Below, in pieces: positions 30,625-53,196 of a stretch of DNA of 64,000 nucleotides. Under the pieces are notes generated by a model, which was not told the DNA's origin, did no database searches, and worked only from the letters and a program-made list of their open reading frames with translations. Origin of the DNA: Paragordius varius (lineage: Eukaryota > Animalia > Nematomorpha); NCBI GenBank assembly GCA_964247055.1, contig OZ176054.1, positions 9,300,001 to 9,364,000 of the forward strand. Direction: 5' to 3'. Position numbers and translations under genes: made by a program. How positions within the stretch are numbered: the first letter of the stretch is position 1; each line of letters opens with the position of its first letter.

Positions 30625-33600
30625 ATGTCCCTACCCTCAACACATCTTCTGTTAATATATTCGGCCAAACAAGTTATTCAGATCTGCACTAACCATGAAT
30701 TGTATCTATCTGGAAAAAATAGTAATATGTCCCAACTCTCAGAAAAATTGATCTTGGGAAAGAGGACGGGAATATCTATTGTGATTGATTTGTTAGTCAC
30801 TTTGATTATAATATATTAAGGAACGGAATCATTGAAGAAATAGATTATGATAACGTTATATTTGAACGATATGGATATGCTATTTTTGAAAATTACATTG
30901 ATGCTCGGGAAATGATAATACTACCGGGATTTATTGATGCCCATACTCATCCAGTATGGGCAGGTGACAGAATTAATGAATTTAATATGAAAGTAATTTA
31001 TAAAATACAAACTTTACAAAAAACATATATATAAGTGTGCTCAGAAATTATAAAAAATTTTGAAGATTATATCGCATATTTTAAGGTATTGGCATGCTTT
31101 AAGCAGCGATACTCAAATCGCGACCCTAAAGTGCTTGTCTATTCCCTAATTTAAAAGAGTGATTTTTATTTTGAGTGCTATTGTATTTTTTTTCAGTATT
31201 TAAAAAATACCGTTTAATTCAGTAATTTCTCAATTATAGGATTTTAATTTATAAGGAGAATTCCTGCTTTTTATATTGAAAATTATGCTTTCGATTTTGA
31301 TCATACGCATCTGAATTATCTTCATAATGATTCCAATTTAGAAGAATTATTTGACAGAAATCGCAAGCGTATTTTGAGTTTTGGCAGGATGTGCCAAATA
31401 AACATAAAATTTAAAATTATCTTTATTGTTTTGTTTCAAATCACTTTGAGGCGGCATATTAATAAATAAAATATGTTAAAAGATACATGTTGCCTATAAA
31501 AACCAGATTTGTTAAAAAACATTGATTGGTAATATTTCCATTTTGTAGAATTTTTATACAATATATTTAGTTTATAAATACCCGTATATAAAGTCATACA
31601 ATTTGTCGGTAGTGTGTTGTGGCCCTCGCGGAAAAAAACATTTTATGCGGTCAGTCAAATATTTTGGTGAATTTCACTGCTTTTAGATGTGGAATGCTAA
31701 CGTTAAGTTTGATTTATATTTAAAAACTAAAGTATATGAGTTTTTGTCTGCAAGTAATAGAATAATGTGTAGGTCATTCTAATGAATTTTACATTATATT
31801 ATTTTTTGTGTTTATAATAATGCATATTCGACCGTATTCACATAGAAAAGCTGCCATTTGTTATATATTATTTTATTAAGTAGAATCACCGTATTTGCAA
31901 ATCGTTACATCTAAATTTATTCCGTATATTTCTTATTTCAAATTGGCCTTTTTATCCCTTATCCATAAAATATATTTTTGACATTCTTAATAACATTGTT
32001 CATGTATCTTACTTATAGTTCCCACTTTTATATGAGCCATTTCACATTATTTTTGGCCGATTAGTTAAACAATAGGGTATGGATAAAAAACGAAAAATGT
32101 ATAAAATTATACAATTTTTCCCAATCTTACAACATTAAATTTTTCCTATTTAATTGCGGACAAAATTTGTTTTATATCATACGATCTGTATTATCAATTT
32201 GCCATCATAAATTTGTTATATATATATATATATATATCAGATTAAAGGTATGACATATCAAGAAATAGCAAAAGCAGGTGGTGGTATATTTTCTACAGTT
32301 TTGGCCACACAAATGGCGGATGAGGAAAGTTTATACACTACCCTAATTGAACGATTATTACTGATGGCTAGGAATGGAACAACAACCATAGAATGTAAAA
32401 CGTAAAAAATTTTCAATTATAAAGTTATGAGAAAAATAAACTATTATAACCAAAATGTAATATTTTGTTCTCGATACAAATAAGAAACAATAACACGTTG
32501 ACGGTTTAGATTTTTGACAATTATGGTCTTAATCGGGCTTTTATTACTGAAAAAAACATATATGTATATTGTTTAAAACAAAACGAGATTAACCATTTAA
32601 TTTTATTGTTATCCAGGTAATAATTGAACTGTTAGTGAATTATTAGGAATGGAACAATCAGTATTAGAAGGTAAAACGTAACAATTTTTTTACCAATTAT
32701 AAATTTGTGAGAAAAGAAGACCCATTATAACTGAATGTAGATTACATTGTGGGCAACTTTTAACCAGGCTTTTATTACAAAAACGGAAAATAACCATTTA
32801 ATTTGAATTATCATAATTGCGATTAAATTTAATTTAAATTTACTGCAAAATTTATCTTTCATGACTTATATCTCTTTAAGCGGTCACCGACATAATCATT
32901 AATATACCAGTCGAATAAAGCGAATGTAAAAAAATTGATTTATCAAAAGTTAGAAAATATAGTATTCATTTTTCAATAAGATATAAATGCATAAATACAT
33001 CTAAAATTAAATTTTATATATATATATATATATATATATTTAGGGGGTATGGCTTACAATGGGAAACAGAGGAAAAACTTTTGCGTGTTTTGAAGCTCGC
33101 TTCAGAAAACTTGCCCATTGATTTATCCATAACATATTTAGCCGCACATGCTATACCAAAGTATATTACCAACCAGCTAATCTATGCACTAATATTGATC
33201 GTCAAAATTGATTTGTTAATGATTAGTTATCAATGGAGTAAAAGAATTTATCAAATAATTCGCCAAATTTAAACAAAAATATTTGATAAATAATATAAAA
33301 TTTTAAATTATATAGTTTATGAATACGATCAAAGTAAAATTTAAGGAAGGAACCCAACACAGTTAACAAATATGACATATATATAGAAATATGGACGAAA
33401 CGTAAAAATATAAAGACATTTTTTTCCTAAGATACAACCATACTTTTTAAATTTGATTTTTTAAAATATAACTTATTGTTTTAAACATCAAAGTATAAAC
33501 AAGATGTTTATTGTTAACACGATCAATTAATTATTTTAAATTCATTATTGAATGATTTCAATAAGATAAATTAAGGTTTGAAAAGTATGGTTGTCTTTTA

Positions 33601-36132
33601 AAAAATATTTTGTCTTCATATTTTTACAATAATATAATAAAGAAATATGGATGTTAACACATTTACCAAAAACATAACGGATGTACATATACCAAACCTT
33701 GCAAAGCTTCAAAAAAATCATGGGATTATAGTTCACAATATTGATGCTTTCTGTGATACAGGCTATTTTGACATCCAATCAACATTTCAAATTCTAAAAG
33801 CTGGACACACGCAATTGGGTTTGAATGTTAACTTTCATGGGGAAGAATTAACGCAATTAAATAGTTTTAAGGTTATTTTTTGGTTTTTGTACCATATGTA
33901 AATTACAAAATTTGAAAAATTTATATTATTCAATAAATTATAGATTATTGAACAATTACGTCAATTATCCCCACATAAATCTGTTTCATTTGCTAAGCTA
34001 AACAAAAGAGAAGCGTTGAATGGAAACTCCGAAAATTTAATCAGTTAGTGTTTGTTTTTGGTTTAAAAAACGTTATATAGCAATTGAATTATATAATTTT
34101 AATTTATAATGATCTATTTTTTATAAAATAAGTAAGTATCTTCGTTTTATTAGTGGTTGTAACCAAAATAGTTTTGTACTAAAAACTATCGATATAGTTT
34201 TAAAAGGGTGTTCTGATTTAATCATTACCATTTATTAAATTTTCCTCTTCCTTTTTTTCCAGATAGTAAGGAATTACCTATGTATGCCATATCCCATTTG
34301 GAGGAATTGAGTGAGGATGGGATTGAAGCTTTGAAAGATGATGCGCACACCGTAGCCATTTTATTACCCATGACAAAATTTAATCTCAAAATAAGTGATA
34401 TCAATAGGCCGCCAGCTCGAAAACTCATAGATTCCAATGTGCCTGTAGCATTAGGCACAGATTTTAATCCTGGAGTTTGGTGTACTTCTATGGTTTGTTT
34501 TTAACCAAAAAAATCTTTTTTTATTGTTTATATAATGAATACTAAATAAAAATATAATGAGCAATTTTTTAGTAATATTTTAGTAACATGTATATGTTTA
34601 AAAACCAAAAAACACCCTTAATGATAATATTTCAAAACTACACTGGTATTAATATTAATACAGAAACCGATATACAGTAAACGTCCCTATATTTACTACT
34701 TCCTTCATAATATTCGGTAACAGTTCCTTAAAACTAATTGGCGATTTTATGCTTTTTTCTGATTTTTGAATAAAGCCCTAATTTTAAAGATGTAATCATT
34801 CAAAGTTGGTCACATCTATAATAGGGTAAAACGCTTTAAGTGAGTCAAAGAAAAATGAATAAAATTAAATCATTTATTAATATTTTTATTCAAATATCTG
34901 TAATAATATTTATTTTAATCAAAAAAATTATATAATTTATTTTTAATAAACGGCCACCATGATGCGGATATTATTTTTTCTATAGGTCATTATAGCGAAG
35001 TAGGGAAGGGAGTCCACCTTATATTAACAAAAATGAAATTATAGAGACAAAAAATTTAAAAAAAATAATCATATTGTTTTTCAACCTTAATTTTCCCACA
35101 TAAACCATTCAATAAAACTTAAATTTAAAATAATTAGTGGTTAACAATTTTCTTCTCATTCCCCATTATGCAACTGTAAAACCATAGATTATAATTATTA
35201 TTTAAATATTCAAGGCTGTAAGAAAGTATGACTAATTTTACCCAAAAAAATTATTGTCTTTTAGTTGTTTACGTTTGGTCTGGATATAATTTATCTAACT
35301 CAATAGCCTATTGTTATGTATATGGCGGCACTGACCATGGGTATGACTTTGGAAGAATGTTTAATATCATCAACGTTAAATGCGGCCGCTTCGCTTAACC
35401 TTTCACGAGATCGGGGCTCTATTGAACGCGGAAAGTTGGGGGATCTTATTATAATCCAATGTGACGAGTATGAGAACTAAATCAATTTTATAAATCATTT
35501 TTTTTTCTAAAAAATATCTTTTTCCGATGAATGTATACATTATTAATATGTATTTTTTGTAAGGATGGGGGGGGGGGGTGGTTAATTTTGGATTACCATA
35601 ACCCCCTAAAAGGAATGTTTTTGAAAATATAGGGCGTTAAAAATGACATCAAAAGTAGCTTTTTTAACGGAAACCAGGCTAACCCTAGAACTATATAATA
35701 TATTAAAATTTAAAGAATTACCACTACCAAGTGTGGAATTTTATACAGTAAAATTATAAATTTTACAATAATTCAAATTCTCATTATTCTATAAAATATG
35801 AAATCACATAACACGTTAGTATTTAAAAAAATTTACCATTACCATGTGGCAAAACTTTGAAAATAGTTTAAATTAATAAGTTTTACGATAATTCAAATTA
35901 TTACATAAATAATTATTTTCAACACATTTTAAGTTGGAGACATTTGATCCATCGATTTGGCGATTCTGAATCCATGATCAGAGCTGTGATAAAACGCGGT
36001 CAAATAATACACAGTTCGGCTTTGGAGGAAGAAAAATTGAATGCTTTCATAAATCCATTGAAAGCTAGCGGGAGACATGGTCCTTGGAGTGGTCAAATGA
36101 TTTTTGCATCATTAATGTCAAATTGTTTTTGA
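30625..36132 (+). CDS. AMDHD1: Imidazolonepropionase (amidohydrolase domain-containing 1), 9 exons, about 511 aa
   Basis: Exons 30625-30791, 30821-30992, 32241-32401, 33044-33160, 33643-33871, 33944-34043, 34263-34492, 35307-35467, 35934-36132 (sum 1536 nt, in frame). Motifs [53 protein letters not shown]. Confidence 0.9.
32620..32810 (+). repeat. Decayed tandem duplicate of the 3' half of AMDHD1 exon 3 plus adjacent intron
   Basis: aattgaactgttagtgaattattaggaatggaacaatcagtattagaaggtaaaacgtaac parallels 32349-32406 aattgaacgattattactgatggctaggaatggaacaacaaccatagaatgtaaaacgtaaa. Similarity continues into the intron (caattataaa, ggcttttattac, taaccatttaattt). Confidence 0.7.
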
Positions 36133-37300
36133 TTTTATTTTCTTAATTTTCTCTCAAAAATATGCATCTTGGAAACAGTAAAATTATATAAACAAACCGA
36201 AACTAACGACAAAAAATATTTCAATAACGACATCCAGACCTTGTACATGATTTTTTGCGTAAACTATATATTACATTATTAAAACTAATTGAGTATGATT
36301 TACCAATTTATATATTAATTGCTAAATTTTCAACCCAAAACAATATGTTTATTTATAAAAATAAGGTTTAAAAATATAATGTACTTTTAAAAAAAAATTG
36401 TCTTATAGTTTTATTTTGTTCTTATAATTTTATTTTTTACTGTTTGGGCTTACAATTTACAAAGACATTGGAAAGTCTTGCAAATATAGACTGCTGTTAT
36501 TTGTCCTATTATTTATGTATATCATTAATATACTACGGTTTGGAAACATGTCAGAGTTATTTAATGATACATACTGATTTTCATGGGTATAATATGTTAA
36601 ATTTTAAAAAACTAAAAACGCGAATATTTTATATTATGCGCAAAGCTAAATTATTTAATTATACAAGTTATATAAAAAATTAAAAACCAAGATATATATT
36701 ATTTCTTTAAAAAAATTAAATTAAGTGCAAATATACAATTTATAATCATGTGCATTTACGATGATGGCAATATATTATTTATAAATTTTTCCTTATTATT
36801 TATTTTATAATGATAAGTGTTATGGTCAAATATTGCTCATATCATATGATATTTTTTTAATATCTCATATTTTTCACTAAAAATTTAAAAATAAATTTAA
36901 TATATATTTTAATATTTATTGTTAAGTTAATATATTTAAGAAAAAAATTAAAAGATTTTTGGACTATAATTTGATTTATTAACCTTATTTAATATAAAAT
37001 AATCGGACAGTGGTAAATTAATCTTTTTAAAAAAACGAACTACTAGCGATAAATAATTTAATTTTCTTATTTTATAATTATTACATATTATTAAATGAAA
37101 TGAAGGAACCATTAAAATGACATCATTAATTTTATCTTCTAGAAATTTGACAATGTTTCGGCACAATTACATTTTATACTTAAAAGCACCTTGTGTGATT
37201 AGACTTTGAGATATAAATTAATCAATAAAACTTAATGAATAGCCTAATCCAACATAGATGAATATATCAAAAACATTTTTATTAAATTATAAAGAAATAA

Positions 37301-39296
37301 TCATCCAAATATAGCATTTTTTATTGCATCTGTATATTGAGCAGGGACCCAGTAAATCCAATATCGAGATGCTTCAGTAGGACCCAATTGAATTCCCTTG
37401 CAGAAATAACACATCATAAAATATTTTAATAAATTTTACAGGTTAAATTAATGAATTTTATACAGTAAAGATGGAAATTAAAAAACGCAATAGTAAAAGA
37501 CAAACAATCATACTTTTTAAACCTTAATATTTTCTCCATAAACTATATATTACAATAAATATATTACAATTAAATGTAGCATAGAATTTACATTTCTATT
37601 TCTTATTTTGCAACCCAAAGATCATTTATATAAAAATTAAAAAGATGGTTATCTTTTCAAAATACTATTTGTAAAATAAAATATAACATTATTTTTGCTC
37701 TAATAAATTTCTTCAAAACAAGGAAATTAAATATTTATTACCATTATGTGATATTCCTCATGGCCTTCAATCGGTTCGCTAACAACCGTGACAATTGAAT
37801 TTAAGGGAAGTTTTTGTGTTCTATCTAAAATACATTGATTTCAATTAATTTATATTTTACAACATTACACTTAAAATTATGAAGCCTTGGATAGATTTTC
37901 GTATTTTTTGCCATTTTATAAAGTTAAAAAGAATGAAAAGAAAAAAGAATGGTAATGCAATTAAAATTATTTTAAATCCATAATACGACCTTTCGTTCCA
38001 ATCCATAATTGATCCAATTCTAGTTTAAAGGTTAGCCTAAGCTTGCCACCACCCCTTTCAAGCATACCCGTTAAAGGTTCAAAAGGTAATGGTTCCTATA
38101 TATGTGTATATTTGAAAAAACAAAATTTTATGCAAGCCAAATGTTTGTTACTAAGACAGGGTTGCCAATACACGGCCCTTCGAGACTTTTCTCGGCATAG
38201 TAAAATTAATATTTTTAACATATTTTTAAAATAAGTATATCTAATTGACAACAAACTATAAAAAAATTGTTATATTGTGTTTGCTTTTAACATTTTTTAG
38301 TTTGAGATCTATTAAAATATTTATTAATGCTCTTGTGTGATTCAAAGATGCGGCCGGTTGGAATGTTTGAGCTTAAAATGCGGCTCGCGAAGCCATTCGT
38401 GTTGGACATCTCTGATTTGAGTTTAATAATGATTACAATTCCATTATAACAATTTATAAATAAAAAATCTCAATATACTGACCAATTTTAGTGCTAAAAA
38501 TTTTGCAATTTAGATGTCCATATATTCATTAGAATAAAATAAGTTATAATTTTATATATAAATATACAATTTCGCTTTTTATCGAACTTAACGCTTTTTC
38601 TATCAAATTTAACCCTTTCTAAATAATTACATCAACTTTTACAATTAAACACAACATCCAATTAAACTCACATTATCACTCACATTTAAAACAAATTAAA
38701 TAAAAATATTTTTGCACCATTTAATTGTTTAAGGTAAAAAACATTGCTATTAATTGCGATACTCAAATAAATTAATTAAGGTTATTATACAAGACTATTA
38801 AACTTTAAAATGCTTAGAAATATTTTTAATATGTAATAAATTAAAAATAAGCATTGAGTGTGAATATAAAAGTGTTGTTTGATTGGAATTAATGTTGGGT
38901 TTTATCAAAAAATAAGTTTGGTTGGCAAAATATTTAATTTTAAGATTATAAAGGTGTTGAGTTAAGTATGAATAGTGGAACTATAATAAAAAAGGTATTA
39001 GTCTAAAAGAATATCGCTAGACAAATTTCTAATTTTCGCATTTCATTCTAAGACTACACCAAAAATAGGGCCGTCCTCTAACTATACATTATTTTATAAT
39101 CCCATCATTCAGACAAGATTCTTTAATATGTATGCAAATATGTGGATATTTATATGAATAGATATATTAACGAAAGGCAACTTTTAGATAATAAAAATTG
39201 TAAATCTGTTGAATGTTAATATAACATTCGACAAAAGTTAAACCCCAATTTATTCATTGTCCATAACCGTAATTTTAATTTATCAAAAACTACGAC

Positions 39297-39339
<43 letters not shown>

Positions 39340-41570
39340 TATATAGAAAATACCAAACCAATAAATGCATATGATTATGTATTTTGAATCGTTCAGGAAG
39401 ACTGTATCAATGTTAAGACTAACCTCAAATATTTTGCTAAAAAGGAGTCTATTTATTTAAATTAATAAATAGAGCAAAATTTCTTTTACATAGTATCCTT
39501 ACCATATATTTTACTTGTTTAATTATCAATATACATCGAGAAAAAAAATTTATATTACTTTTTAGAGTCATGTACCTTTTAAATTGGTATTTTTTAATCC
39601 AACATTTAATTACAAATTGTTTGAGTATTTTAGTCGTTTGCGTTTTAAAAAATATTATAGGATTGATTAATTTATAATAACTGAGTATAAAAAAGGCTTT
39701 TATGTAATATTAGAGTAATTATTATTAAAAATTGTAAAATAAACCTGTATATTTTTAATTCCAATCATAGCATCTTCGGGAACGCCCTTTTCAATAATTT
39801 TTTGATGAATCTAAAAACATGTGATATTCGATTATTTTTAATAGTTAATGTATCAATTATAATATTATATATCTCATAAATTTTTTGGGATTGGCCGACA
39901 AATTTAACGATTGATACAAAATTTAAAAATGTATGTTGTATTCGAAAAAACATTTTTTATATGTAAATAACCAATTTATTTTTATATATTTAATAATATT
40001 TTTTAATTTTTTATACATACAAACTTACACAGGTAGAACGGGCTTACTTTGCAATTTTAAAACACCAATTTAGGATAATTAGCGCTGACCAAGTCATGAC
40101 CCGGGCAATTGACCGGGTCATGACTTGGTCAGTGACTATATATTTTTTGACCATGGTCATTTGCTGGTAAATTATCTTTTTTGGAGGAGATAGTAGGATT
40201 TTATTTTTTAATATATCTTTTAAAAAATATAATTAAATATTAATTATATAATATAATTGATATTTAAAAATGCATATTTAAGAATATATTAATTGTGAAT
40301 ATATATCCTTTAAAACAAACAGCAAAATATCCAATTAATCCATACATGTAAACCAAAATTAAATGACAGAACATATAATTACGATATTAATTTAATGTTG
40401 AAAGAAAGTGTAAAACAATCTAGGTAAATTTTATAAAATATAATGTATATGAAAAGCCATGTATTTGAGGATATAGAAAGCCATAAACATGTGGCAAAAT
40501 TTATTTATATTACATTGACATTTAATATTATTGAAAACAAAATCTTGATTAAATTTGATAGAATATATTTGTAAATAATAATTATCAAAAAAATCTTAAT
40601 CTAACTTATTAAGCAATATGACATTATTAGTGAAACGCAAGTGTCGTTCGGGCTATTTACATAATCACCAATATCTTACTGTAAGATATTTTTGTGCATA
40701 TAATTTTTTTATAGTTTTGATAAAAAAATTTAAAAAGTGGTCATGACCATAGTCATGACTGGGTCTGACCGGACTTTTTCGAAAAAGCAGTCAAATGCAC
40801 AACCCTAAAAATAGCAAATAAGCAAAGATGGCTAATATTGTGGTAAAAAATTTTTAAAAAAAGAAACCAGTTAGATTTTATCAGTAATTTCATTAAACAA
40901 CATCTGTTTAATGCGAGCCAATATAAAAACGGTACACAGACAGCATGGTGTATGTGAAAACTATCTAATTCAGTTTAACTTAAAGGATTAATCTAACACA
41001 CAATAAACCACACAAGGTAAACCGTGATGTAGGTTTTTCAAAAATACTTTTAAATCTAAGATATTTTTGAGAAACAATATCACAAGATGGCTAATATAAA
41101 GATATAAAACATAAACTTTGTTTTTTGATAAAGAATGAACTTCAGGTTGAGGAGTTTCATCTTCAATTGCAGTTTTTGTGGGAGCTCTAACAGAGAGGAT
41201 GTCGTTAAATGTGGATCCTATAACCATAAATTTGGAACCATTAGTGGCATTTAGATCTTTAAGTGTTTGTTCATCTTTGGTGGGTCCCTTAAAACTTATT
41301 TTTTGTAGAGTAGAATGTAAACCAGTAAGTTGACTCACCTCTTCTTTAAGGTCTTTTATGGTCATAAATGGATTAACTTTAAGGTCGTATTTATCTTTCT
41401 TATACAAAATTTTTATGTCTATTTCAGGTACATCTTGAAACTGATTAAATGATGTTTTACTTAAGTTATTGGATATATTTTGGATATCAGTGGATATTTT
41501 AAAATTAGTATTTGCTATTTTTAATGAATAATTTACCTATGCTGGGAGTAGATTCAATATCGCTTTCCAT
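37301..41570 (-). CDS. UBFD1: Ubiquitin family domain-containing protein 1, 6 exons, about 260 aa
   Basis: Exons (minus strand) 41570-41537, 41514-41117, 39810-39745, 38095-37990, 37824-37742, 37396-37301 (sum 783 nt). Ubl domain (LQKISFKGPTKDEQTLKDL...KFMVIGST) and C-terminal motifs GGKLRLTFKLELDQLWIGTK, VVSEPIEGHEEYHIM, QLGPTEASRYWIYWVPAQY. Confidence 0.92.
39298..39345. repeat. (TA)n microsatellite; others at about 32218-32237, 33016-33038, 51860-51880 and 60797-60842
   Basis: Directly visible dinucleotide runs. Confidence 0.9.
40071..40807. mobile_element. Older copy of the TAGGGTTGTG hAT MITE family in UBFD1 intron 2
   Basis: Shares tgaccaagtcatgacc, ggtcagtgactat and the 3' end gcagtcaaatgcacaacccta with 52612-53196. 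Its 5' TIR is degenerate. Confidence 0.7.
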
Positions 41571-42394
41571 TAAGCGCTAACAATATGATATAAAAATTTA
41601 CAATATGATAGTACGTCAATAAGCAACATTGTTGGTGCATAAAAAAAATGTTAAATTTATCCTTAATTCTATTACTTTTATTTAATTATGAACAAATTTT
41701 GTTTATATCGCACGCCACTATGCTACGATTAACACTAATAATATGAGGCTGGCATAAATGTGGATACTGTACTCTTGCGAGAACCATTAAAGTCATATCT
41801 GTATTTAAAATGCTTAAAATGGCATTTAATTTACAAGTTGGTTAATAGATTTTATTTTTATCGCATATATATTTAGATAATGTATAAAAAGTTCAGAGGC
41901 AAACGAAATCGTTCGCAATCAAATATAAGGTTAATATGTGGTAAAATACATAAATATTCTGATTAATGGGAGTTCAAGTGTTTTGGATTTCGGTACTTAC
42001 GTGATTTAAAAAAGTATGTTTAACTTTCGCTATAATTCGATACTGTCAAAGGACAAATTTTGCCAACTTACGCTAAATAAACTTTTTCAAAAACTAATGG
42101 CATTGAAAAAAACAATAAATAAAATAATATTCTTTTAAAAGATATTAAAAAATTTAATTTCATGATTTGGAATCAAGTGTCTTAATTTATTTCCTCCTAA
42201 ATAGGGAGTTCTAATAAAAGTCAAAAATTTTATTATTTGGCAATAAAAGATGGCATTATTTTTAAGAAATTAGGGTGCTTTATGCTTGCACGTAACAAGG
42301 AAAAACGGTATATACACGCATCAAGATACTGTAACATCAATTGGGGTTAGTGTCTAAAATATCTTGATCAGATATATATTTTTTCATAATAAAA

Positions 42395-42660
42395 TCTTTG
42401 GAACTCTGGATGTGGAGAAAACTCTTGCAAATATGGAGGGAAAACTAAAAACACTTTATAAAATCAATCCCAATCATTGCTTAGAATATCCATCCACACC
42501 AAACTATCTAACTTCGGCCATATTATGAGATCTAACTCAGAGGAAAAATCCTTGATGTTGGGAAATATTAGTTGTACACGTGAAAGGGTCCGAAGAAGAA
42601 TAAGATGGATGGACAATATTTTACAAGAACCAATGCAACCTTGGCACAACTCGTCATTAA
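42395..42660 (+). mobile_element. 3' fragment of an RTE/BovB-like non-LTR retrotransposon
   Basis: Translation ELWMWRKLLQI... and KLSNFGHIMRSNSEEKSLMLGNISCTRERVRRRIRWMDNI matches the characteristic RTE C-terminal pattern 'LxYFGHxMRxxSLEKxxMLGxxxGxRxRGRxRxRWxDxI'. Confidence 0.75.
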
Positions 42661-44180
42661 AATTTAAAATAGCAGCTTAGGGCGAAGTTTTTATTTACAA
42701 TATTGCAAAACGACATCGACTGTAAAAATACGCACACAAATAAATATATCAGGATTTTCATGCTGCTTTTGGTTTTGAGGCATACAAATAAAATAAATGA
42801 ATTTGCTTTGTAATTTCTTGATATCATAAAAATAGCTAATTTGCGCACATATATTTGAGAAAAAAATTGATTAACACTTGGATACAACAAATCTTGCACT
42901 TATATAACATTAATAAACCGAAATATATAAATAATTTTATTTAAAAATATTTGATATTACTTATTTTAAGCTAAAACCGAAAGGTATGGTAAAATTGAAA
43001 AAAAATACAAAATAAACCGCTTTTTCTATTTCTATCTATGTTAGATGGGAATTAAATAAAAAATTAGCTTTAATTTTACCCTTAATATTAAATGAAGACT
43101 TTTGCAAAATAAAAATGGCGTCGAAATAGTTTGACATGGAACTTTTTTTTCAAAACAAAATTTTAAATATTTTGGCATATTTATATAATTTTTATTAGGA
43201 TAGAAGCATAAATTTAAATTGGGACCGTTTCCATCAGAAGTTTTTCAAAAATCCCAACTCAAATTTAGTCTGGTGTATTTAGATACCCCAATTTGAATCG
43301 AAGTGTTAATATACCATAAAATAAATGACATAATATTTTAAGAAGGAAACAATATTTTTACAACAAATTAGAACTGAAATCCTTAAGTCTTAAATTTTTT
43401 AACCATTTCGAAATTGGCTGGTTCTCGTTAAATAAAAAAATAGCTTGAGCGATAAAAACTTTTTAATTCTATATGACATCAAAAAACATAAATAATAAAT
43501 GCATACTTGCTCAAATATTTTTTAGAAAATATTTTTTGAAGCATACATCAAAATATTTCGAGGAATTATGGAAACGGTATAAACACGGTGCACTATATTA
43601 GACATTTTTTCTATATAATTTGATGATGCTGAACATTTTTATCCACCCCATTTTATAATTAATATTAATTTAAAGACAAACGCGTATATAATCTAAATTG
43701 TGAGGTTATAAAAATGTTCAGCATCATTGAAATATATAGAAATAGGGTTTTAATATTATTATATGGAGCGCTTTTCCGTTTCCATCACGCCTTAAAAAGT
43801 ATGAAGCCTTCCAGAAAAATTTGTTAAATTAAATTTTTGAAAAAAGCAGGCTTTTATTAAAATAAATACTTGGTATCAAATTTTGCATATATTTATGATT
43901 ATATTCCGATCTCAGCATTTTTGCGTTTATTTTATTAAAAACAGACTATTTTAAAAGAGCAAAAAATTTTTAGACTTCTGGAGCGCACATTTAAAAATAA
44001 AAATTTTTAGAATTTTTTTCGCTTATCAACATTTGGCAAATTGGGTATGCAAATACCCCAGACAATATTTGAGTCAATGTTTTAAAAAAAACTACTGAAA
44101 GAAACGGTTTCAATAAAAAATTTAATTATTTTATATTTTTAAAATATTTAATTTTAAACAAGCCTGGGAATATAACTAAC

Positions 44181-44681
44181 TGTTAGAGGCTAATTTGAAT
44201 AGACTTGTTAAACACACTACATTCGTTATATATCAGTGCATTAACCTATTAACTTATCTGTATACTATTATTATATTGTTATAACCTCCCATTCCCATGC
44301 CGCCCATCATGGGATATCCTCCACCACCCCATCCCATACCCATGCCATAACCGCCAAACGGACGCGTTAAACTACTCAAGCCGTAGCCAAGCAAGGCTCC
44401 ACCCAGTAAACCCGTTCCAAGGCCCGGACCACCTCCTCTGCCACTGTATTAACTTATCTGTATACTATTATTATATTGTTATAACCTTCCCACCACTTGT
44501 GATCATTATTATACTTTGAGATAATTGTATATAAGCCAACATCCCTTGATATATGTGAATACATTAAACCTAATTATCGTAAATATATATATATAGAGAT
44601 CATGATATAACGCGCAGTTGTTTTTGTGATATACAATATTTTGTGATATACAATAAATACCTTACCATCCCCAAATATTAT
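44181..44681 (+). repeat. 5' LTR (about 500 bp) with an internal 41-bp direct repeat and AATAAA at 44652
   Basis: Begins with TG and matches the 3' LTR over 99 bp. The right edge is inferred from the PBS position, and the expected terminal CA is absent. Confidence 0.7.
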
Positions 44682-44696
44682 TGGTGGCCAAGAGAT

Positions 44697-47600
44697 ATGA
44701 CAGACGAACCAATGAATATCACAGCTCAAAAATACAATAATAATAGCAATCGATACAGTAACAACAATAATATCAATCGGTTACAACATAATAAATCCAA
44801 TCGACAAACAATAATAAAATCATCTATTACATGCAAACATTGCGGTTTCACACACCCACCCAACAAGTGTCCAGCCTGGAGACGATCCTGCAACAAATGC
44901 GGAAAGCTAAACCATTTTGCGAGAATGTGTGTAGCCAAAAAACAAAGACCGCACTTCAATAGGCAATTGTCGAAGGAAGTTAACGTGGGTCATAAGGCGC
45001 TAACTCCCTTACTGATAACACTAGTAATAAACGGGTTAAAAAAAGATTTTATATATGATACCGGTTTGGACATCAGTGTAATAAACTTTGACACATGGGA
45101 GCAAATCGGTAAACCCAAGCTGCATCCGACACCCCCAGTAAAATCGTACAACAATACCACAGTGCCAATGATGGGGACGGCAAGTGTCAAAGTCCAAGTA
45201 AATGGTAAACAAATGGTCGGGGACATATGTGTCCTATGCAAAACGATGGGAATGGCCCCGCTAATCTGTGGACTGGACTGGATGGCGAAATTCCAGATTG
45301 AGATGCCACAGGTTAAAGTTAATTATCTTAAATTGAATGAGATTTGTGAAATTTTTAAAAATTTATTCGAAAATAAGTAAGGGTGTTATAAGGACCCTGT
45401 AAAAATTCGCATTGCAGCTAATGCGATCCCGAAAGTATGGCCATGTCGCAGGGTGCCTTTTCGATTAAGAGAAAAGGTGGAGAAAGAGCTGACGAGGCTA
45501 GAAAAGTTAGGCATTTTAGAACCGGTTGATCCTAACACCACACCTGTGACATGGGCCACGCCTACGGTTAATGTACTTAAACCGAATGGCGAATTAAGAA
45601 TATGTAGTGATTTTCGGGTAACGATTAATAAGTGGTTGCAAGAAGACTCCCACATAATTCCCACGTTTGATGAGTTGGTGTCGAAAATAGGTGAAGGTAT
45701 CACATTCACGAAAATTGATTTAAAAGATGCTTACCTCCAGATGCCAGTGGCAGAGGAGTGTCAACAATTGTTAACTATCTCAACACATAAGGGTTTTTTT
45801 AGATACAAACGCATGCCGTTTGGACTGGCCACGGCACCTATCATCTTCCAAAGAGTGATGGAAAAAGTGCTGGCTGAAAGTCCGGGAACTTGCGTATATT
45901 TAGATGACGTCCTAGTGACTGGTAGGACGGAAAATGAGCACATTAACAATTTAAATAACGTATTAAGTCGTCTCGATAAGGCCGGATTTAAATTAAGACA
46001 AGATAAAATAATGATAGGCGCAGAATCAGTAAACTATTTAGGATTTGAAATATCGAAAAAGGGTATAAGTCCCTGTGAAAGCAAAATTAAAGCAATCAAG
46101 GAACTAAAAAGGCCGGTAGATAAAAAGTCGTTACGTAGCTTTTTAGGTTTTTTGACATTTCATGAACGCTTTATACCAAAATTACAAATGATAGTCGGTC
46201 CCTTACATGAATTAACTAGTAAAAATACGAGATGGTATTGGACTGAGAAACATGAGAAAAGCTGGTTAGCAGCTAAGAATTTGTTAAGCGAAAAAGTGTT
46301 TTTAACACCATATAATTCGAATAGGAAATTGATAATAGAAACTGATGCGTCAGATTTAGGATTCGGATGTATTCTAAGTCATGAAATTAATAGTGAAAGG
46401 TTACCGATAGCGTATGCCTCACAAAAATGTAGCAACGCTGAAAGGAATTATTCCACGATAGAGAAGGAATTAAAAGCAATATTATTTGCGTTAAGAAAGT
46501 TTCATAGTTTCATATATGGTAGAAAATTTACAATATTAACTGACCATTTACCCTTAGTAAAGTTAATAAATAGAGATCGAAATTTAAAAGAGATTCATAA
46601 TGCTAAAATACTAAGGTGGATTAATATGATAAATGAATACGACTTTGAAATAAGTCATCAAAAAGGGGCTCAAAATAGAGCTGATTATTTATCGAGATGG
46701 CCGATTGACGAGATCGTTGCCTATGATGAAGATTATGCGGTTACCAGATATTTGAGATTTTTGAATTGTCATAACGTGCGGTTAAGCCGAGATGAAATTC
46801 GAAAAGAAACTGCATTAGATGCAGTATTACAAAAAGTAATTAAAGCGTTAAACAACCATGACTGGAGTTCTCCAGAATTAAAAAAGTTTGTAAACCGTAA
46901 AGACGAGTTGGCATATCAATATGGCTTATTAAGTTTAAATGATCGGATTGTAATTCCGAAGCCCCTCCAAAAAGAGGTGGTGAGATACCTACACAGCGGG
47001 CATAACAACGTAGAGACCATGAAAGCGATGGCCAGATTTACGTGTTATTGGCCAGAATTAGAAAATGACCTGGTAAAAGCCAGTAGTCAATGCGAATCGT
47101 GCCAACGTAGTAGGCCGAATGTCACTCAGAATTCCACGTATCAGTGGGATCATAATGTTGCTGTGTGGGAGCGTTTGCATATTGATATAGCCGGACCGGT
47201 AGACGGTTTGTATTGGTTGTTGATAATTGATAGTGCCTCGAAATGCGCAGAAGGATTTATGTTGAAAAAGGTAACCGCAGCGAATATAATCCACAAATTA
47301 GAAGAAACGTTTGCAAGGTTTGGCTTTGCAAGAGAGATTGTGAGCGATAACGCTTCATATTTCAGTAACGAGTACTTTACGTCAACATTAAGTACGTTAG
47401 GGGCGAAACATATTAAGGTTACCCCAGAGTAATGGGATGGTAGAAAGGTTAGTAGGTACAATAAAAAATAAATACAAAAGAATAAAAAACAATGGGTTAT
47501 CCACCCACGAAGCGTTTAACACTAGCTTATGGGCGTATAGAAATTCTATACACTCAACAACGAAAGAAACCCCGGCCCAGTTAATGTTTAAGCGTACCCC

Positions 47601-48072
47601 CCATACGCCCTTAACCTGGTTAAATAGTAGGGAGAGATTGTTAGATGCACCGGCCCCCCGACGGCAGTTTGCCATTAATGACCAGGTAATGATTAAAAAT
47701 GAATTAAGTCCAGGGTGGCCCGCCGGAGAGATTACGGACCGTACAGGGTTATTTTCATACAAGGTATGGGACAAGGACCGAGACAAAGTTGTGAGGAAAC
47801 ACGCTGACCAAATAGTACAACAACCACAACCACAGCCGACCACTTCCAGCAACACAAATGAGGAGGAGGTAACCACTGCCACGGATGATGGAACAATCGC
47901 TGAAACGCAACCAAACACGATCAATGCATACGAAATCGAACCAATTACTCCGACAGCCGAAAGTCCAAATAATGATAATACCCAGAAACCTGAGGCTATC
48001 TACTCCCCCGCTAAAACACAAGAACGGAGATACCCGACGAGAAGTCGGCAGAAACCTGCCCGCTTTCGTTAA
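44697..48072 (+). pseudogene. Disrupted gag-pol of the gypsy element
   Basis: CKHCGFTHPPNKC and CNKCGKLNHFARMC knuckles, protease YDTG, in-frame TAA at 45378-45380, RT KIDLKDAYLQ and YLDD, RNase H ETDAS, integrase HHCC and D,D motifs, and a frameshift at about 47432 just before SNGMVER. Confidence 0.9.
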
Positions 48073-49851
48073 GGGGGGGGGAAGTGATGTTAGAGGCTAA
48101 TTTGAATAGACTTGTTAAACACACTACATTCGTTATATATCAGTGCATTAACCTATTAACTTATCTGTATACTATTATTATATTGTATTTGAATCGAACT
48201 GAAATGAATATGTTGTATCCAAATGTTAAATGTTTTGTGTATTTTAGTGATGTTTCTTAAAATGAAGCCTCTAGCTTTGAAAAATTTTAAATAAATCTGC
48301 GCAAAATTTTCCATTATTGACACCACCAAAAGTGTGAATAACTTTCTTAACTCATTCGTAATAGGGGAAACCAAAAGGATTATAATAATAATCCTAAATC
48401 AGAATATATGTGTATATATCTTCATTAGCTTATTTTTTGTGTAATGTAACAGGCATAGGAATTAAATTAAGGTTAGTAAATGTAAATAATTAATTTAAGA
48501 AGCTTTCAGGATATATTTTTCCAGCAAAAATTTGATATATCAGGATTTTAATATTACTGTTCGTTTTATTTTTAGAACTGTCCCAATTTAAGACACTAAA
48601 GGTCGCAAAACTGTAAAATAAATAAGCTTTATTATCTAATGGATTCAGTATGCGATAAAAATAGAATTCTAAAATTGAGCTCTGGGATAAAACTACCCCA
48701 AACAGTAAATGACTTGCAAGTTTTTCAAGTCATGGCTTGCTTTCTTGTGATAAAAAAAATTTAACATTACACGACTTAAGTCAAGCAAGAAACTTGATAA
48801 GGAGGTGATAAAAAATCACATGATCAAGTAAAACTTAAAGATTTTGCAAGTGTGCTGTAGGGCACACTTGACAGATTTAAAAATATGGATAAAATTATTT
48901 TGGAAACTATTTATGTATAAAATTTAGGTTTTATATGTAAATCAAACCTTTGTTAATGCTATAAGTTGTTAATTATATATATGGCTAATTAATTTATTCA
49001 TTGGGTGGATACAAAAGAGGATAAATTTATAGAAAACGGCTAATATTTAATAACATGGCATATAAAAATATGCTAAATATATCAATTCCGTGACCGTAAA
49101 AAAATTGGATTCTGGAAAATTTCTTAAAATTAATAATTAAATATTAATCTCGTAAAATTTCAAATCTTTGTTTATAAACAAAACTTCACTATTAACCAAT
49201 GTAAAGAATTTATTTCATCATAAATTTATTTTGAAGTTTATAATCAATTAAAAATAATTATGTTATATTGTTAAACATCTTCCCATTATATTTGCAACTG
49301 GACTCCAAACAAAATAAGTAGTGTGGTAAAATAATGGAAAGTGTTTTAAGGGCGAATGGTTTCATCAATCTAAAAATTATTACCAGGCTCACAATTTAAA
49401 AAACTCTATATATTAAATAAGATACGTGCCAGTGAGTTTGAAAAACTTCAAGTAATGTATATTGTATTTATTGTTTTTAGCTGAAAATGATCAAAGTTTC
49501 CATAAAATTCGAATTGGGTGGCAAAAAACAGTTACATTCATACGCAAAAGACTTGACTTAAGTGTTTTTTTATCACCAATCTTCAAGTGTACACTTGCTG
49601 GCTTAAGTAATCTTGCTCAACTAGCCACGCTTGGCTTACAAGTCAAGTGCGACTTTTTTATCACCCCACCCTAAGAGTTAGAACTGAAAGCATATGATAC
49701 TGATGAATTCTCCTATCAAAATCTTAATATTTAATCCAGATATTTTTATACCACTGTTTAAGTGTAAACTTAATCTATGGTTTTAATTTGCTCCATATTT
49801 TAAAATATTTGAAACAGTTCTGGGGTCGCAGAGCCCTTAACTTATAATTAA

Positions 49852-50504
49852 ATGAATATTTATATCCAAGAGCTCTGGGGTAAAAACTACCCTAAAATGT
49901 CGCACACATATAAATGTAAATTAATGTCAAGAGTTGAACATCTGGAAGTGGAACGCTGCAAAAATGAAATCAAGTTCAAAAATTTAAATTTGCAAATCCC
50001 TTTCGGAATCGCTTATTGTCGAAATGGATTACATCAAATAAATGTAAACAAATTATATCAGACAACAGATGATGATAAAGATGATAGAGAGAAAATTATA
50101 TATGTTATTAATTGGCTCAAGGATTATTTTAACATTAACCAGCCTTATAGATTTTTTGATCCAGAATTTATTTGTTGGAGCAACTTTAAACAAAGCATGC
50201 ATAATTTTTTATTTAGATTTCTTTGTAAAAACATGGAAAACTCTAATGAAAACTAGTTTGGGACAAACAATATCTTATAAGGAATTGGCTCGAATGAGCG
50301 AAAATCCACAAGCAATTAGAGCCATTGGGAATGCAATGAGCCGAAATATGATTCCCATAATAATACCATGTCATCGAATTATCAAAACAAACGGTGCAAT
50401 AGGTTAATTTGCTTATAAAATTTATAGGAAAATTTTCTTCCGGAATCAAAATAAAAAAATTATTAATTGATCATGAAAAACAAAAATTACATATGCAAAC
50501 ATAA
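49852..50504 (+). CDS. MGMT: O6-methylguanine-DNA methyltransferase, 3 exons, up to 201 aa (true start may be a downstream ATG)
   Basis: Exons 49852-50194, 50217-50402, 50428-50504 (sum 606 nt). TISYKELA, RAIGNAM, active-site PCHR and GAIGKFSSGIKIKKLLIDHE. The model requires 22-nt and 25-nt introns. Confidence 0.85.
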
Positions 50505-50543
50505 ATAAACATTGTGCGTTTATAATTATTTAATCAAAACTCA

Positions 50544-51309
50544 TTAAATTCGCCATCGTAACCAAGCGACTTTCATTCGCAACCAAAGAGATTCAAAGGA
50601 ATCTAAGGCAGGACGAACATCTATGACTGTAAATTTTCCTGTCTCCTTTTCAACTTGCCCACTATCATAGTAGTCGATTATATAACGAACCTCTTTACCA
50701 TTTCGATCGACAACCCAATCATGGCGATCAAAAGGAAGATCATAGCCAAGCAAATTTCTTATACGGGCCCTAAAGATAAATGAAAATATACCTGACTGTG
50801 TAATCTGTTGATTTACCAGCAAAACTTTTTAACTTAGGCATGGGTGTGCCTTCTTCTGCACTCAGAGCCTCCCATTTTAATACCTCGTTCCAGGCTAACT
50901 CATTGTTGTAGTTGTGTATTTTAATAATATTATGCATATCTTTTTGTGAAATATCGCCATCCTTCCACGTCCATCCTTTTTTAATCATAGCGTTCCAAAA
51001 CATTTGTGCTGAAGGATATTCCCATTTTTCATCCGTTCCATATTTGGGGATTGAAGAAATTTCCCGAGATTTTGATAAAGGAAACGGTTGACCAGGAGAT
51101 GGGAGTTGATTAAGAATTGGCATCAAGTTCCGCGGATCTAGACCTGGGTCATTCGATTTAATATTAGGAATACTAGTGTGCATAATAGGACACTCTCTAC
51201 TAGTATATTCTTTTTTTGGAATAATATATGAATGTTTCGAAACAGCATTAGGATAAAATAAAATTGACCGTACAAAATCGTCTTTTTCAAGCCAACTAAT
51301 GTTAAACAT
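50544..51309 (-). CDS. HCCS: Holocytochrome c-type synthase, 2 exons, about 247 aa
   Basis: Exons 51309-50792 and 50769-50544 (sum 744 nt). CP heme motif (ECPIMH), [43 protein letters not shown] and VRYIIDYY. The model requires a 22-nt intron. Confidence 0.92.
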
Positions 51310-52611
51310 TATAGAGGGCTCATATGTTCATAAAAAATACCAAAAATCAAATGTCGGTATCGCTTGAAAAAATCATTCCATATTAGGGTGTAGTTTTTAC
51401 CGATTCGAGAGCTAATATCATAAAATACCATGAAATTATTGAAATGGTAAATTCTGGAATCTAGATCAAAATTTTATAATGTTTTTGGTTAGGGCTTGAG
51501 TGAAATTATTCATATTCACAGCTAATTTTTTTATGTGTTTACAAAAAAATGGCTTAACTGAATTAATAATATGAATATGCAAAATGTCCCTTGCGTGAAA
51601 AAATTATAATAAAAAAAGATGCATGATTTGCTTTTAAATTAATTTAAATATGTAAGGCCTATAAAAAGTAGATGAAATATTAATAACACTACATCCTAAA
51701 CGTATTAAAATATCCGGTTGAAATATATACAGATTCGGATAATTCTAATTATTTGATAAAGCTCCCTCCGAAATAGGCTATTATTAAAATGTAAAAAAGA
51801 TGGATTTTTTTTTATAATAGGATAGAGTACATAGTGACCACAAATAAATATCCTGATGATATATATATATATATATATATTGGATAGGAAATGTATTAGG
51901 ATTATCCTTTGGTCCTTACCATGACTTTGGAAGGTTAATACCCTTTTGTGGTACTAATTTATAGAATTAAATACTGTAATTTTTTTTACTATGTGTGACA
52001 TTTTTGTTTCAGTTATATCGGTGGTATATCAATAATTACATGCTATATTTATTTACAGCTACGGTTTCATTAATTACATCTTTACAATATGTCCTCTCTC
52101 GTACATATATATCTTTTCTATGCAATAAAAGCCATGTAAATTAAAAATTATATAATTCTAAATATTGTTTTGATTTTTCTTACTTTTTTATGAAAACATT
52201 ATATTTCACCATTGACATCCAATAAAATTTGTTCTATAATTTATTTGTACGTTGAAATTAATTACACAAATTAGTTTTTAACTTTTTAACGGTTCTAAAA
52301 TTAGTTTAACAGAAATATTATAAAAAATGGTATTCTAATATCATTTATTTATTTATAATTATTTTGTTTCTATGACTCTTTTTCAAACATATATTTTTAC
52401 GATTTTTTTGGTGTGCTCTAAATAAAAAATGAATGTTCTGAATATTTTCTTGAGTTAAGTTTTCAATCAATTCTTTTACATTGTTATGGCATCTTCATGT
52501 CTTTATTTTAGTTTTGGCAAAGAAATTTTTAATTCGATTTAATTTGGGACTATAAGGCATAAATAATAAATTTCTCTTGTTTTGAAAAGATTTCGCATGG
52601 TGTATTGGGGC

Positions 52612-53196
52612 TAGGGTTGTGTTGACCAAGTCATGACCAGGTCAGTGACTATTTATTTTTTGACCACGATCATTTTAAAAAACAGCTGTTTTTTCAAAAA
52701 ATGTTGCTAAATTTTTTTTGGAAGAGAATAGTATGATTTTATTGTTTATGTTAAAATATAAATATTTAAATATGCTTATGTAACAATATAAAATCGTAAA
52801 GTATGCATCGATTTAATATTAGCATTTAAGCATATCCAGATATTTCGAAAAACATAACAATCCACTTTGCAAAATATGCAATTAATCCATATATGTGAAC
52901 TAATAAAATGAAAAAACATTTTGTTATTGGATATTACAATGATGAAAGAAAGTGTAAAACAAACCATGTAAGATTTTATTTGAAATATCCAGTATTAAAA
53001 GCAATGTATTTGAAAATTTTGAAGGCCACAAACATGTGGCAAAATTAAACAAAATTCATGATTAAATTTGATATAAAATATTTGTAAATAATTAATACCA
53101 AAAAAATGTATAAAATAAACTTAAAAAAACGTGATGGTCATAACCACGGTCATGGACCGGACTTTTTTTGTAAAAGCAGTCAAATGCACAACCCTA
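52612..53196. mobile_element. hAT MITE, 585 bp
   Basis: 10-bp TIR TAGGGTTGTG / CACAACCCTA and a perfect 8-bp TSD ATTGGGGC at 52604-52611 and 53197-53204. Confidence 0.9.

Follow-up and report, generated by a model that had tools for sequence, protein, structure and literature searches.

In a survey of 51 animal genomes (September 2026), introns shorter than 30 bp were found only in myxobolid myxozoans and in one dicyemid, Dicyema (PMC13644364). The median intron measures 27 bp in Henneguya salminicola and 22 bp in both Thelohanellus kitauei and Myxobolus rasmusseni; the myxobolid genomes are compact (20-200 Mb) and contain few transposable elements, and their whole intron population is tiny and has long-read RNA support (PMC13644364). 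Dicyema japonicum, with a genome of 67.5 Mb, has a mean intron length of 38 bp (PMC6736024). Human ultra-short introns measure 43-65 nucleotides (nt) and depend on SPF45/RBM17 (PMC4463651, 10.1101/784868). Here, we consider five segments of 22-29 nt in the genes AMDHD1, UBFD1, MGMT (two segments), and HCCS of the horsehair worm Paragordius varius. They lie in a 64,000-nt stretch of its genome (GCA_964247055.1, OZ176054.1:9,300,001-9,364,000, forward strand; hereafter the window, to which all coordinates refer unless another sequence is named), and were first proposed to be introns in a reading of this DNA alone (the sequence-only reading). Three of the five, in AMDHD1 (29 nt), MGMT (25 nt), and HCCS (22 nt), are quite probably genuine, extremely short U2-type GT-AG introns. 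That judgement is a joint one, covering these three introns, their origin by shrinkage, a 43-nt first intron in MGMT, and the ambiguity of the UBFD1 segment.

These introns resemble those of myxobolids in being 22-29-nt GT-AG introns at conserved positions in conserved animal genes of a parasitic, AT-rich organism, and the tiny introns of myxobolids were validated by positional conservation, the same argument as is used here (PMC13644364). Unlike myxobolid introns, those of the hairworm stand beside introns of 0.4-1.2 kb in the same gene, occur near highly repeated DNA, and are known here from DNA. With Dicyema the hairworm shares introns well under 40 nt in an animal lineage, although Dicyema is a spiralian with genome-wide shrinkage and the hairworm an ecdysozoan. 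Ogino and colleagues are said to have reported in 2010 that dicyemid intron positions are conserved. In ciliates (Paramecium at about 25 nt, Stentor) and nucleomorphs, the lengths, AT-richness, and GT-AG ends are similar; in contrast to the hairworm, those protists have tiny introns almost exclusively. The human case is alike in that a minority of very short introns occurs in a long-intron genome, and both the 43-nt MGMT intron and a 48-nt intron of another hairworm, Gordionus, fall within its range, yet the lower limit in humans lies at about double the 22-29 nt of the hairworm. Nematomorpha are unmentioned in the 51-genome survey (PMC13644364), the literature search found no paper pairing Nematomorpha with short introns, and the word 'intron' is absent from two hairworm genome preprints.

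Each of the five strings was located once in the window, at the coordinates and on the strand first given for it, and deleting each restores the reading frame. The segments of AMDHD1, UBFD1, HCCS, and the second MGMT site begin with GT and end with AG, as does the 43-nt version of the first MGMT intron. After removal, the frame is gap-free and colinear with orthologues at HCCS, AMDHD1, and the second MGMT site; at the first MGMT site and UBFD1 this comparison does not discriminate. All three supported introns (22, 25, and 29 nt) are below about 30 nt. The window has a G+C content of 28.6%. As possible branch points, TTCAT, CTTAT, and TTGAT are seen by eye 10-15 nt before AG, with T-rich 3' ends after them; in sequence of 80% A+T such motifs cannot be told apart from chance.

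The 22-nt segment of HCCS is strongly supported as an intron by comparison with homologues. There are 24 GT/GC..AG options that would restore the frame, and the conserved block is rebuilt by the 22-nt one alone; the spliced product is gapless against eight homologues across DYTVR/ARIRNLLGY (slashes mark splice junctions). Its closest match, at 65% identity, is from Gordionus sp. m RMFG-2023, whose gene (locus L002, which spans HCCS and UBFD1; GCA_954871325.2, OX940783.2, 8699331-8720152) has a single 48-nt intron that splits the homologous codon in the same phase. The junctions read GTC AG/GTATAT...TTTAG/G GCC in the window and ATT AA/GTTTTT...TTTAG/A GCT in Gordionus. The Gordionus intron was mapped through isoform P0186, a cluster mate of isoform P0001 (CAK9290471.1). 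The latter lacks 24 conserved residues (...TLD) that are kept in the 257-amino-acid P0186 and in all homologues, and this gap looks like a spurious additional annotated intron.

Positional homology is also found in AMDHD1, where the 29-nt segment is strongly supported as an intron on the same comparative grounds. By their NCBIfam matches, the exons and the orthologue in Gordionus belong to hutI (imidazolonepropionase), the start at 30625 is as in Gordionus, and the spliced N-terminus is colinear with the Gordionus protein (P0040); together with the HCCS match, this colinearity places the window in a hairworm other than Gordionus. The block GISIVIDL/... across the junction, in agreement with the Gordionus orthologue, is kept by the 29-nt option alone. 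At the same codon and in the same phase, the Gordionus gene (locus L001) holds an intron of 1,544 nt with an identical donor hexamer (GAT TT/GTTAGT in the window vs. GAT AT/GTTAGT in Gordionus), and an acceptor also occupies this site in L003, a eukaryotic metagenome contig that is unrelated. By our own estimate, the chance of striking both orthologous intron sites, in HCCS and AMDHD1, is about (1/771) x (9/1479). The later AMDHD1 introns are 1248, 642, 482, approximately 369-384, 814, and 466 nt long, at positions common with Gordionus, which bears out the earlier claim that normal-sized introns stand beside tiny ones. Their donors are, in order, GTAATT, GTAAAA, GTATAT, GTAAAT, GTTTGT, and GTATGA; because these resemble the donors of the tiny introns, tiny and long introns appear to use similar signals. 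In Gordionus, AMDHD1 carries one further intron, some 728 nt long (L001 9832-10561), inside an exon that is unbroken in the window (30821-30992), which is, by comparison of the two genes, an intron gain or loss between the hairworms. When a representative protein library was searched with AMDHD1 exon 2, the top match was a 2393-amino-acid protein (P0036) in which 14 separate stretches aligned to the same first 22 residues of the query; P0036 is probably a repeat protein of low complexity, rich in N/I/E/D/Y, rather than a relative.

The 25-nt segment of MGMT is well supported as an intron by its exons and homologues. The middle exon matches positions 2-62 of 81 of Pfam DNA_binding_1 and aligns with residues 99-155 of human MGMT in PDB, both up to the exon edge, and the upstream frame meets a stop at bases 2-4 of the segment. 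Splicing would yield KTNGAIG/KFSSGIKIKKLLIDHE (an NGAIG/KFSSG join) where a homologue has NSNGKIGKYSLG...LLDFE; in P0029, this junction reads NGKIGKYSLG. With a hidden Markov model (HMM) of homologues, the 25-nt option scores 10 bits above a 34-nt alternative. The homologue search returned seven distant matches, none of them from a hairworm, and MGMT was not found in either of the two fetched Gordionus loci, including 10 kb on each side of Gordionus HCCS. MGMT and HCCS are arranged tail-to-tail in the window, 40 nt apart.

Table 1. Window coordinates of the genes, exons, and putative short introns considered in the text.
Feature	Position	Strand	Basis or signals
AMDHD1 exons 1 and 2	30625-30791; 30821-30992	+	flank the 29-nt intron
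AMDHD1 putative intron, 29-nt GT-AG, phase 2	30792..30820	+	donor GTTAGT, acceptor TTAAG
UBFD1 candidate intron, 22-nt GT-AG, after codon 11 (ATG at 41570)	41515..41536	-	frame restoration
MGMT gene, three exons and two short introns	49924..50506	+	Pfam PF01035, NCBIfam ogt, PDB MGMT
MGMT first intron, favoured 43-nt GT-AG version (40 nt in the deletion allele)	50174..50216	+	encloses the 22-nt GC-AG segment 50195-50216
AAG deletion polymorphism in MGMT	50193..50195	+	3-nt gap in contigs; takes the G of the proposed GC donor
MGMT putative second intron, 25-nt GT-AG, phase 1	50403..50427	+	donor GTTAAT, acceptor TATAG; separates the last exon from the exon with the PCHR active site
HCCS coding sequence	51309-50792 and 50769-50544	-	exons match Pfam Cyto_heme_lyase
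HCCS putative intron, 22-nt GT-AG, phase 2, sole intron	50770..50791	-	donor GTATAT, acceptor TTTAG

One rival explanation holds that the segments are coding and that a 1-2-nt miscall in the assembly consensus, such as one in a homopolymer, mimics a frameshift, so that there are no introns. A single small indel does yield an uninterrupted open reading frame (ORF) in all five cases, and the UBFD1 segment contains an A5 run in a region (41470-41585) of which three of eight sampled words are missing from the best DNA runs. However, DNA contigs from four runs (X1, X2, X3, and X5) could be aligned over the MGMT/HCCS region. These runs act as DNA, with flat intergenic depth and the tiny segments kept in their contigs. 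The HCCS segment is crossed without a gap by contigs of X1, X3, and X5, with one internal single-nucleotide polymorphism (SNP; 50778 A>G), and the 25-nt MGMT segment is crossed gap-free and unchanged by those of X1, X2, and X3. Since independent contigs from three samples in two studies thus carry both segments at the same length, neither is an assembly indel. A check for consensus indels, proposed with the sequence-only reading, accordingly excludes 1-2-nt errors at HCCS and at both MGMT sites, the sites that the contigs cover. At AMDHD1, positional homology makes such an error unlikely, since true introns occupy both this site and that of HCCS in Gordionus. Read-through would also add 7-14 residues where all homologues are gapless, and the polymorphism seen between contigs and window, about 1 SNP per 80 nt, accounts for the missing words without any error. 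Taken together, a consensus error is a very improbable explanation of the segments as a group. DNA near-identical to 41470-41585 and 49920-51310 also occurs in runs under four coded organism labels (A-D) from several studies; this pattern reflects either worm DNA within samples of other organisms, such as hosts, or differing labels for one taxon.

An alternative possibility is that the genes are decaying pseudogenes, or that a recoding event (a frameshift or hop) bypasses the segments in place of splicing. The genes show no further disruptions, and their catalytic motifs are intact (PCHR in MGMT and HTHP in AMDHD1). HCCS has seven exonic SNPs, of which six leave the residue unchanged when read in the spliced frames, among them all three that fall in the second exon. 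Because the SNPs are mostly synonymous, purifying selection acts on both exons in their separate genomic frames. In the middle exon of MGMT, SNPs are synonymous in three cases out of four. Recoding does not predict exact GT..AG boundaries at orthologous intron sites. Pseudogenes or recoding are therefore likewise very improbable, and splicing is the explanation followed below: we infer that the three segments are removed from RNA and that the spliceosome can handle an intron of 22 nt.

A number of observations weigh against this. RNA support was seen at none of the five sites, the aligned runs being DNA and the RNA-labelled runs lacking these loci; in the RNA-labelled runs X6-X10, which carry the same species label, the fraction of sampled words found was 0.00 for both stretches searched (41470-41585 and 49920-51310). 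In a window-wide scan for ORF-bridging segments, GT(18-35)AG was no commoner than control dinucleotides were, and the window alone thus carries no statistical signal. Each segment has one open frame, and a single 1-2-nt indel could render each coding. Lastly, the HCCS intron position is not common to Aethina (a beetle) or Strongyloides. The HCCS gene of Strongyloides ratti (L005 1001-1737) spans 737 nt and encodes 232 amino acids, lengths that point to a single intron of approximately 38 nt near the N-terminus, at a site unlike that of the hairworm. The AT-rich extra candidates of the scan, several in a myosin gene and one in UBFD1 (41091-41116), join no coding sequence. Tiny introns that are stop-free and a multiple of three in length escape a frame-based method, and this ascertainment applies to the tiny introns described here, none of which has such a length. 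In Paramecium, stop-free introns of 3n length are depleted.

The first intron of MGMT is real and short. A short intron is required: the frame on the upstream side is open as far as about 50254, and that on the downstream side from about 50056. In the reference allele there are six GT/GC..AG options by which the frame is restored, and the homologue HMM, with scores of 109-114 bits, cannot separate them. The sequence-only reading had taken the 22-nt GC-AG segment at 50195-50216 as the intron. In the contigs, the only indel near this site is a 3-nt deletion; since deletions are left-aligned and named by their first deleted base (as checked on homopolymer rows), the deleted bases are AAG at 50193-50195. 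The deletion destroys both the G of the GC donor and the AG of an alternative 22-nt GT-AG option; it is present at about half depth in X2 and X3 and is the sole allele in X5. A common allele thus lacks the donor G of the 22-nt GC-AG intron and offers no equivalent donor. Three options are valid in both alleles, namely 50174-50216 (GT-AG, 43/40 nt; the sole canonical one that preserves the protein), 50180-50216 (GC-AG, 37/34 nt), and a 28-nt GC option at 50115, the last of which breaks the WLKDYF motif of MGMT. On a common haplotype, the AAG deletion is accompanied by five changes linked to one another in the part that encodes the N-terminal domain (50020-50082), and the resulting replacements, R33>K (if 50020 and 50021 are combined), V41I, D50N, and D53E, are conservative, as in a working gene. 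The 43-nt GT-AG version is favoured, at roughly even confidence, because the deletion allele kills the GC donor and the replacements fit a working gene.

It is also conceivable that the 22-nt GC-AG segment is the intron and that the deletion haplotype is null or differently spliced. Its removal restores the frame, and within the 43-nt span AT-richness and a T run mark the 3' half, while 50174-50194 has an exon-like G+C content. The linker from WLKDYF to W-K-T-L would moreover be nearer to the human length, although this point is a lead only, and MGMT is perhaps dispensable, as it does not adjoin HCCS in Gordionus. Set against this are the frequency of the allele that removes the donor G, the poor donor (GCATGC at 50195), and the conservative replacements on the deletion haplotype, which together make the 22-nt version rather doubtful.

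The UBFD1 segment is unproven: it may be a fourth tiny intron, but is accounted for just as well if the assembly is off by one base in length. The gene spans about 4.3 kb; the exon concerned carries a ubiquitin domain in a Pfam scan, and the last exon (37399-37304 on the minus strand) shares 90% identity with the end of a gene in Gordionus that has ubiquitin and PH_UBFD1_C domains and that locus L002 covers except for its 5' end. The frame of the ubiquitin domain opens past a TAG at 41539-41537 and has no ATG ahead of the domain, and some join to the ATG at 41570 is therefore needed. In the window, the frame-compatible options are GT22, GC28, and GC49, with GT22 the sole GT option. Five of the eight sampled words of 41470-41585 are present in each of the five best DNA runs, and because the other three are lacking, there is at least one difference from the window in this region. 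The missing words fit the SNP density seen elsewhere but may also reflect a length difference. It is plausible, at somewhat less than even odds, that UBFD1 has no intron here, with the true sequence one base shorter or the start in a farther upstream exon spliced to this or another acceptor. The UBFD1 N-terminus is unconserved, a homologue search with the UBFD1 ORF (window:40991-41512:-) found no match, chance alone should supply about 1.5 frame-compatible GT..AG pairs over the permissible span (an estimate from base frequencies), more AG acceptors lie downstream, and a 1-nt deletion in the segment, for instance in the A5 run, gives an open frame where sampled words are missing. A tiny intron is nevertheless suggested by the good donor (GTAAAT, the same as that of AMDHD1 intron 5), by a preceding context (ATAG/GT) identical to that of the 25-nt MGMT intron, and by a length equal to that of the solid HCCS case. 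UBFD1 and HCCS are neighbours in both hairworms, in differing order (L002 vs. window 37300-51309), and in Gordionus the same chromosome carries AMDHD1 at a distance of about 100 kb.

These results retain only part of the original proposal. Sub-30-nt introns in four conserved genes had been claimed; those of AMDHD1, HCCS, and the second MGMT site stand, that of UBFD1 is unproven, and that of the first MGMT site is doubtful. Three introns of exactly 22 nt were reduced to a single solid case, HCCS, which by itself sets the suggested 22-nt floor. The first MGMT intron, with its solutions of 43/37 nt, and the 48-nt intron of Gordionus HCCS speak against a clean size gap between 29 and 57 nt, and neither a discrete second size class set off by this gap nor a special spliceosome is supported by these data. 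Nor is this a compact genome dominated by short introns, as the other AMDHD1 introns range from 369 to 1,248 nt, UBFD1 covers several kilobases, and very high-copy repeats flank the MGMT/HCCS pair. The latter, at 48800-49737 and 52552-52800, have a word depth 100-1000x that of the unique MGMT/HCCS region in the four DNA runs, with many internal joints.

The tiny introns would be ordinary introns that were shortened by deletion in this lineage to near the smallest spliceable size. Shrinkage is suggested because Gordionus holds 1,544 nt and 48 nt at the same positions in AMDHD1 and HCCS, respectively. The shortened introns would be recognised through loose, AT-rich signals like those of the long introns in the same genes, with GT followed by A or T at the donor and a T/A-rich run before the AG. 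None of the three has a length divisible by three, so an intron left in the transcript would throw the reading frame into a stop and truncate the protein.

Ultimately, the hairworm appears to be a new animal lineage for an already known kind of intron, with three of the five cases well supported by comparative evidence. There is a reasonable, moderately strong case that introns below 30 nt arose independently in horsehair worms, which would make these the third such animal lineage and the first known among ecdysozoans. Here, unlike in myxobolids and dicyemids, individual introns would shrink to a lower limit of about 22 nt in a repeat-rich genome while their neighbours in the same gene remain kilobases long. 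If so, one spliceosome would handle both size extremes, and intron miniaturisation would be separated from genome compaction, as 29-nt and 1,248-nt introns adjoin in one gene of a repeat-rich genome. The orthologous pairs of 22 vs. 48 nt and 29 vs. 1,544 nt offer material for studying the limits of intron shrinkage. Default aligners and gene predictors skip such introns, and hairworm annotations and estimates of gene loss may need to be re-checked; hairworm genes may be split or overlooked by gene finders and completeness tools that ignore these introns, and the gene loss reported in the phylum could be overstated as a result.

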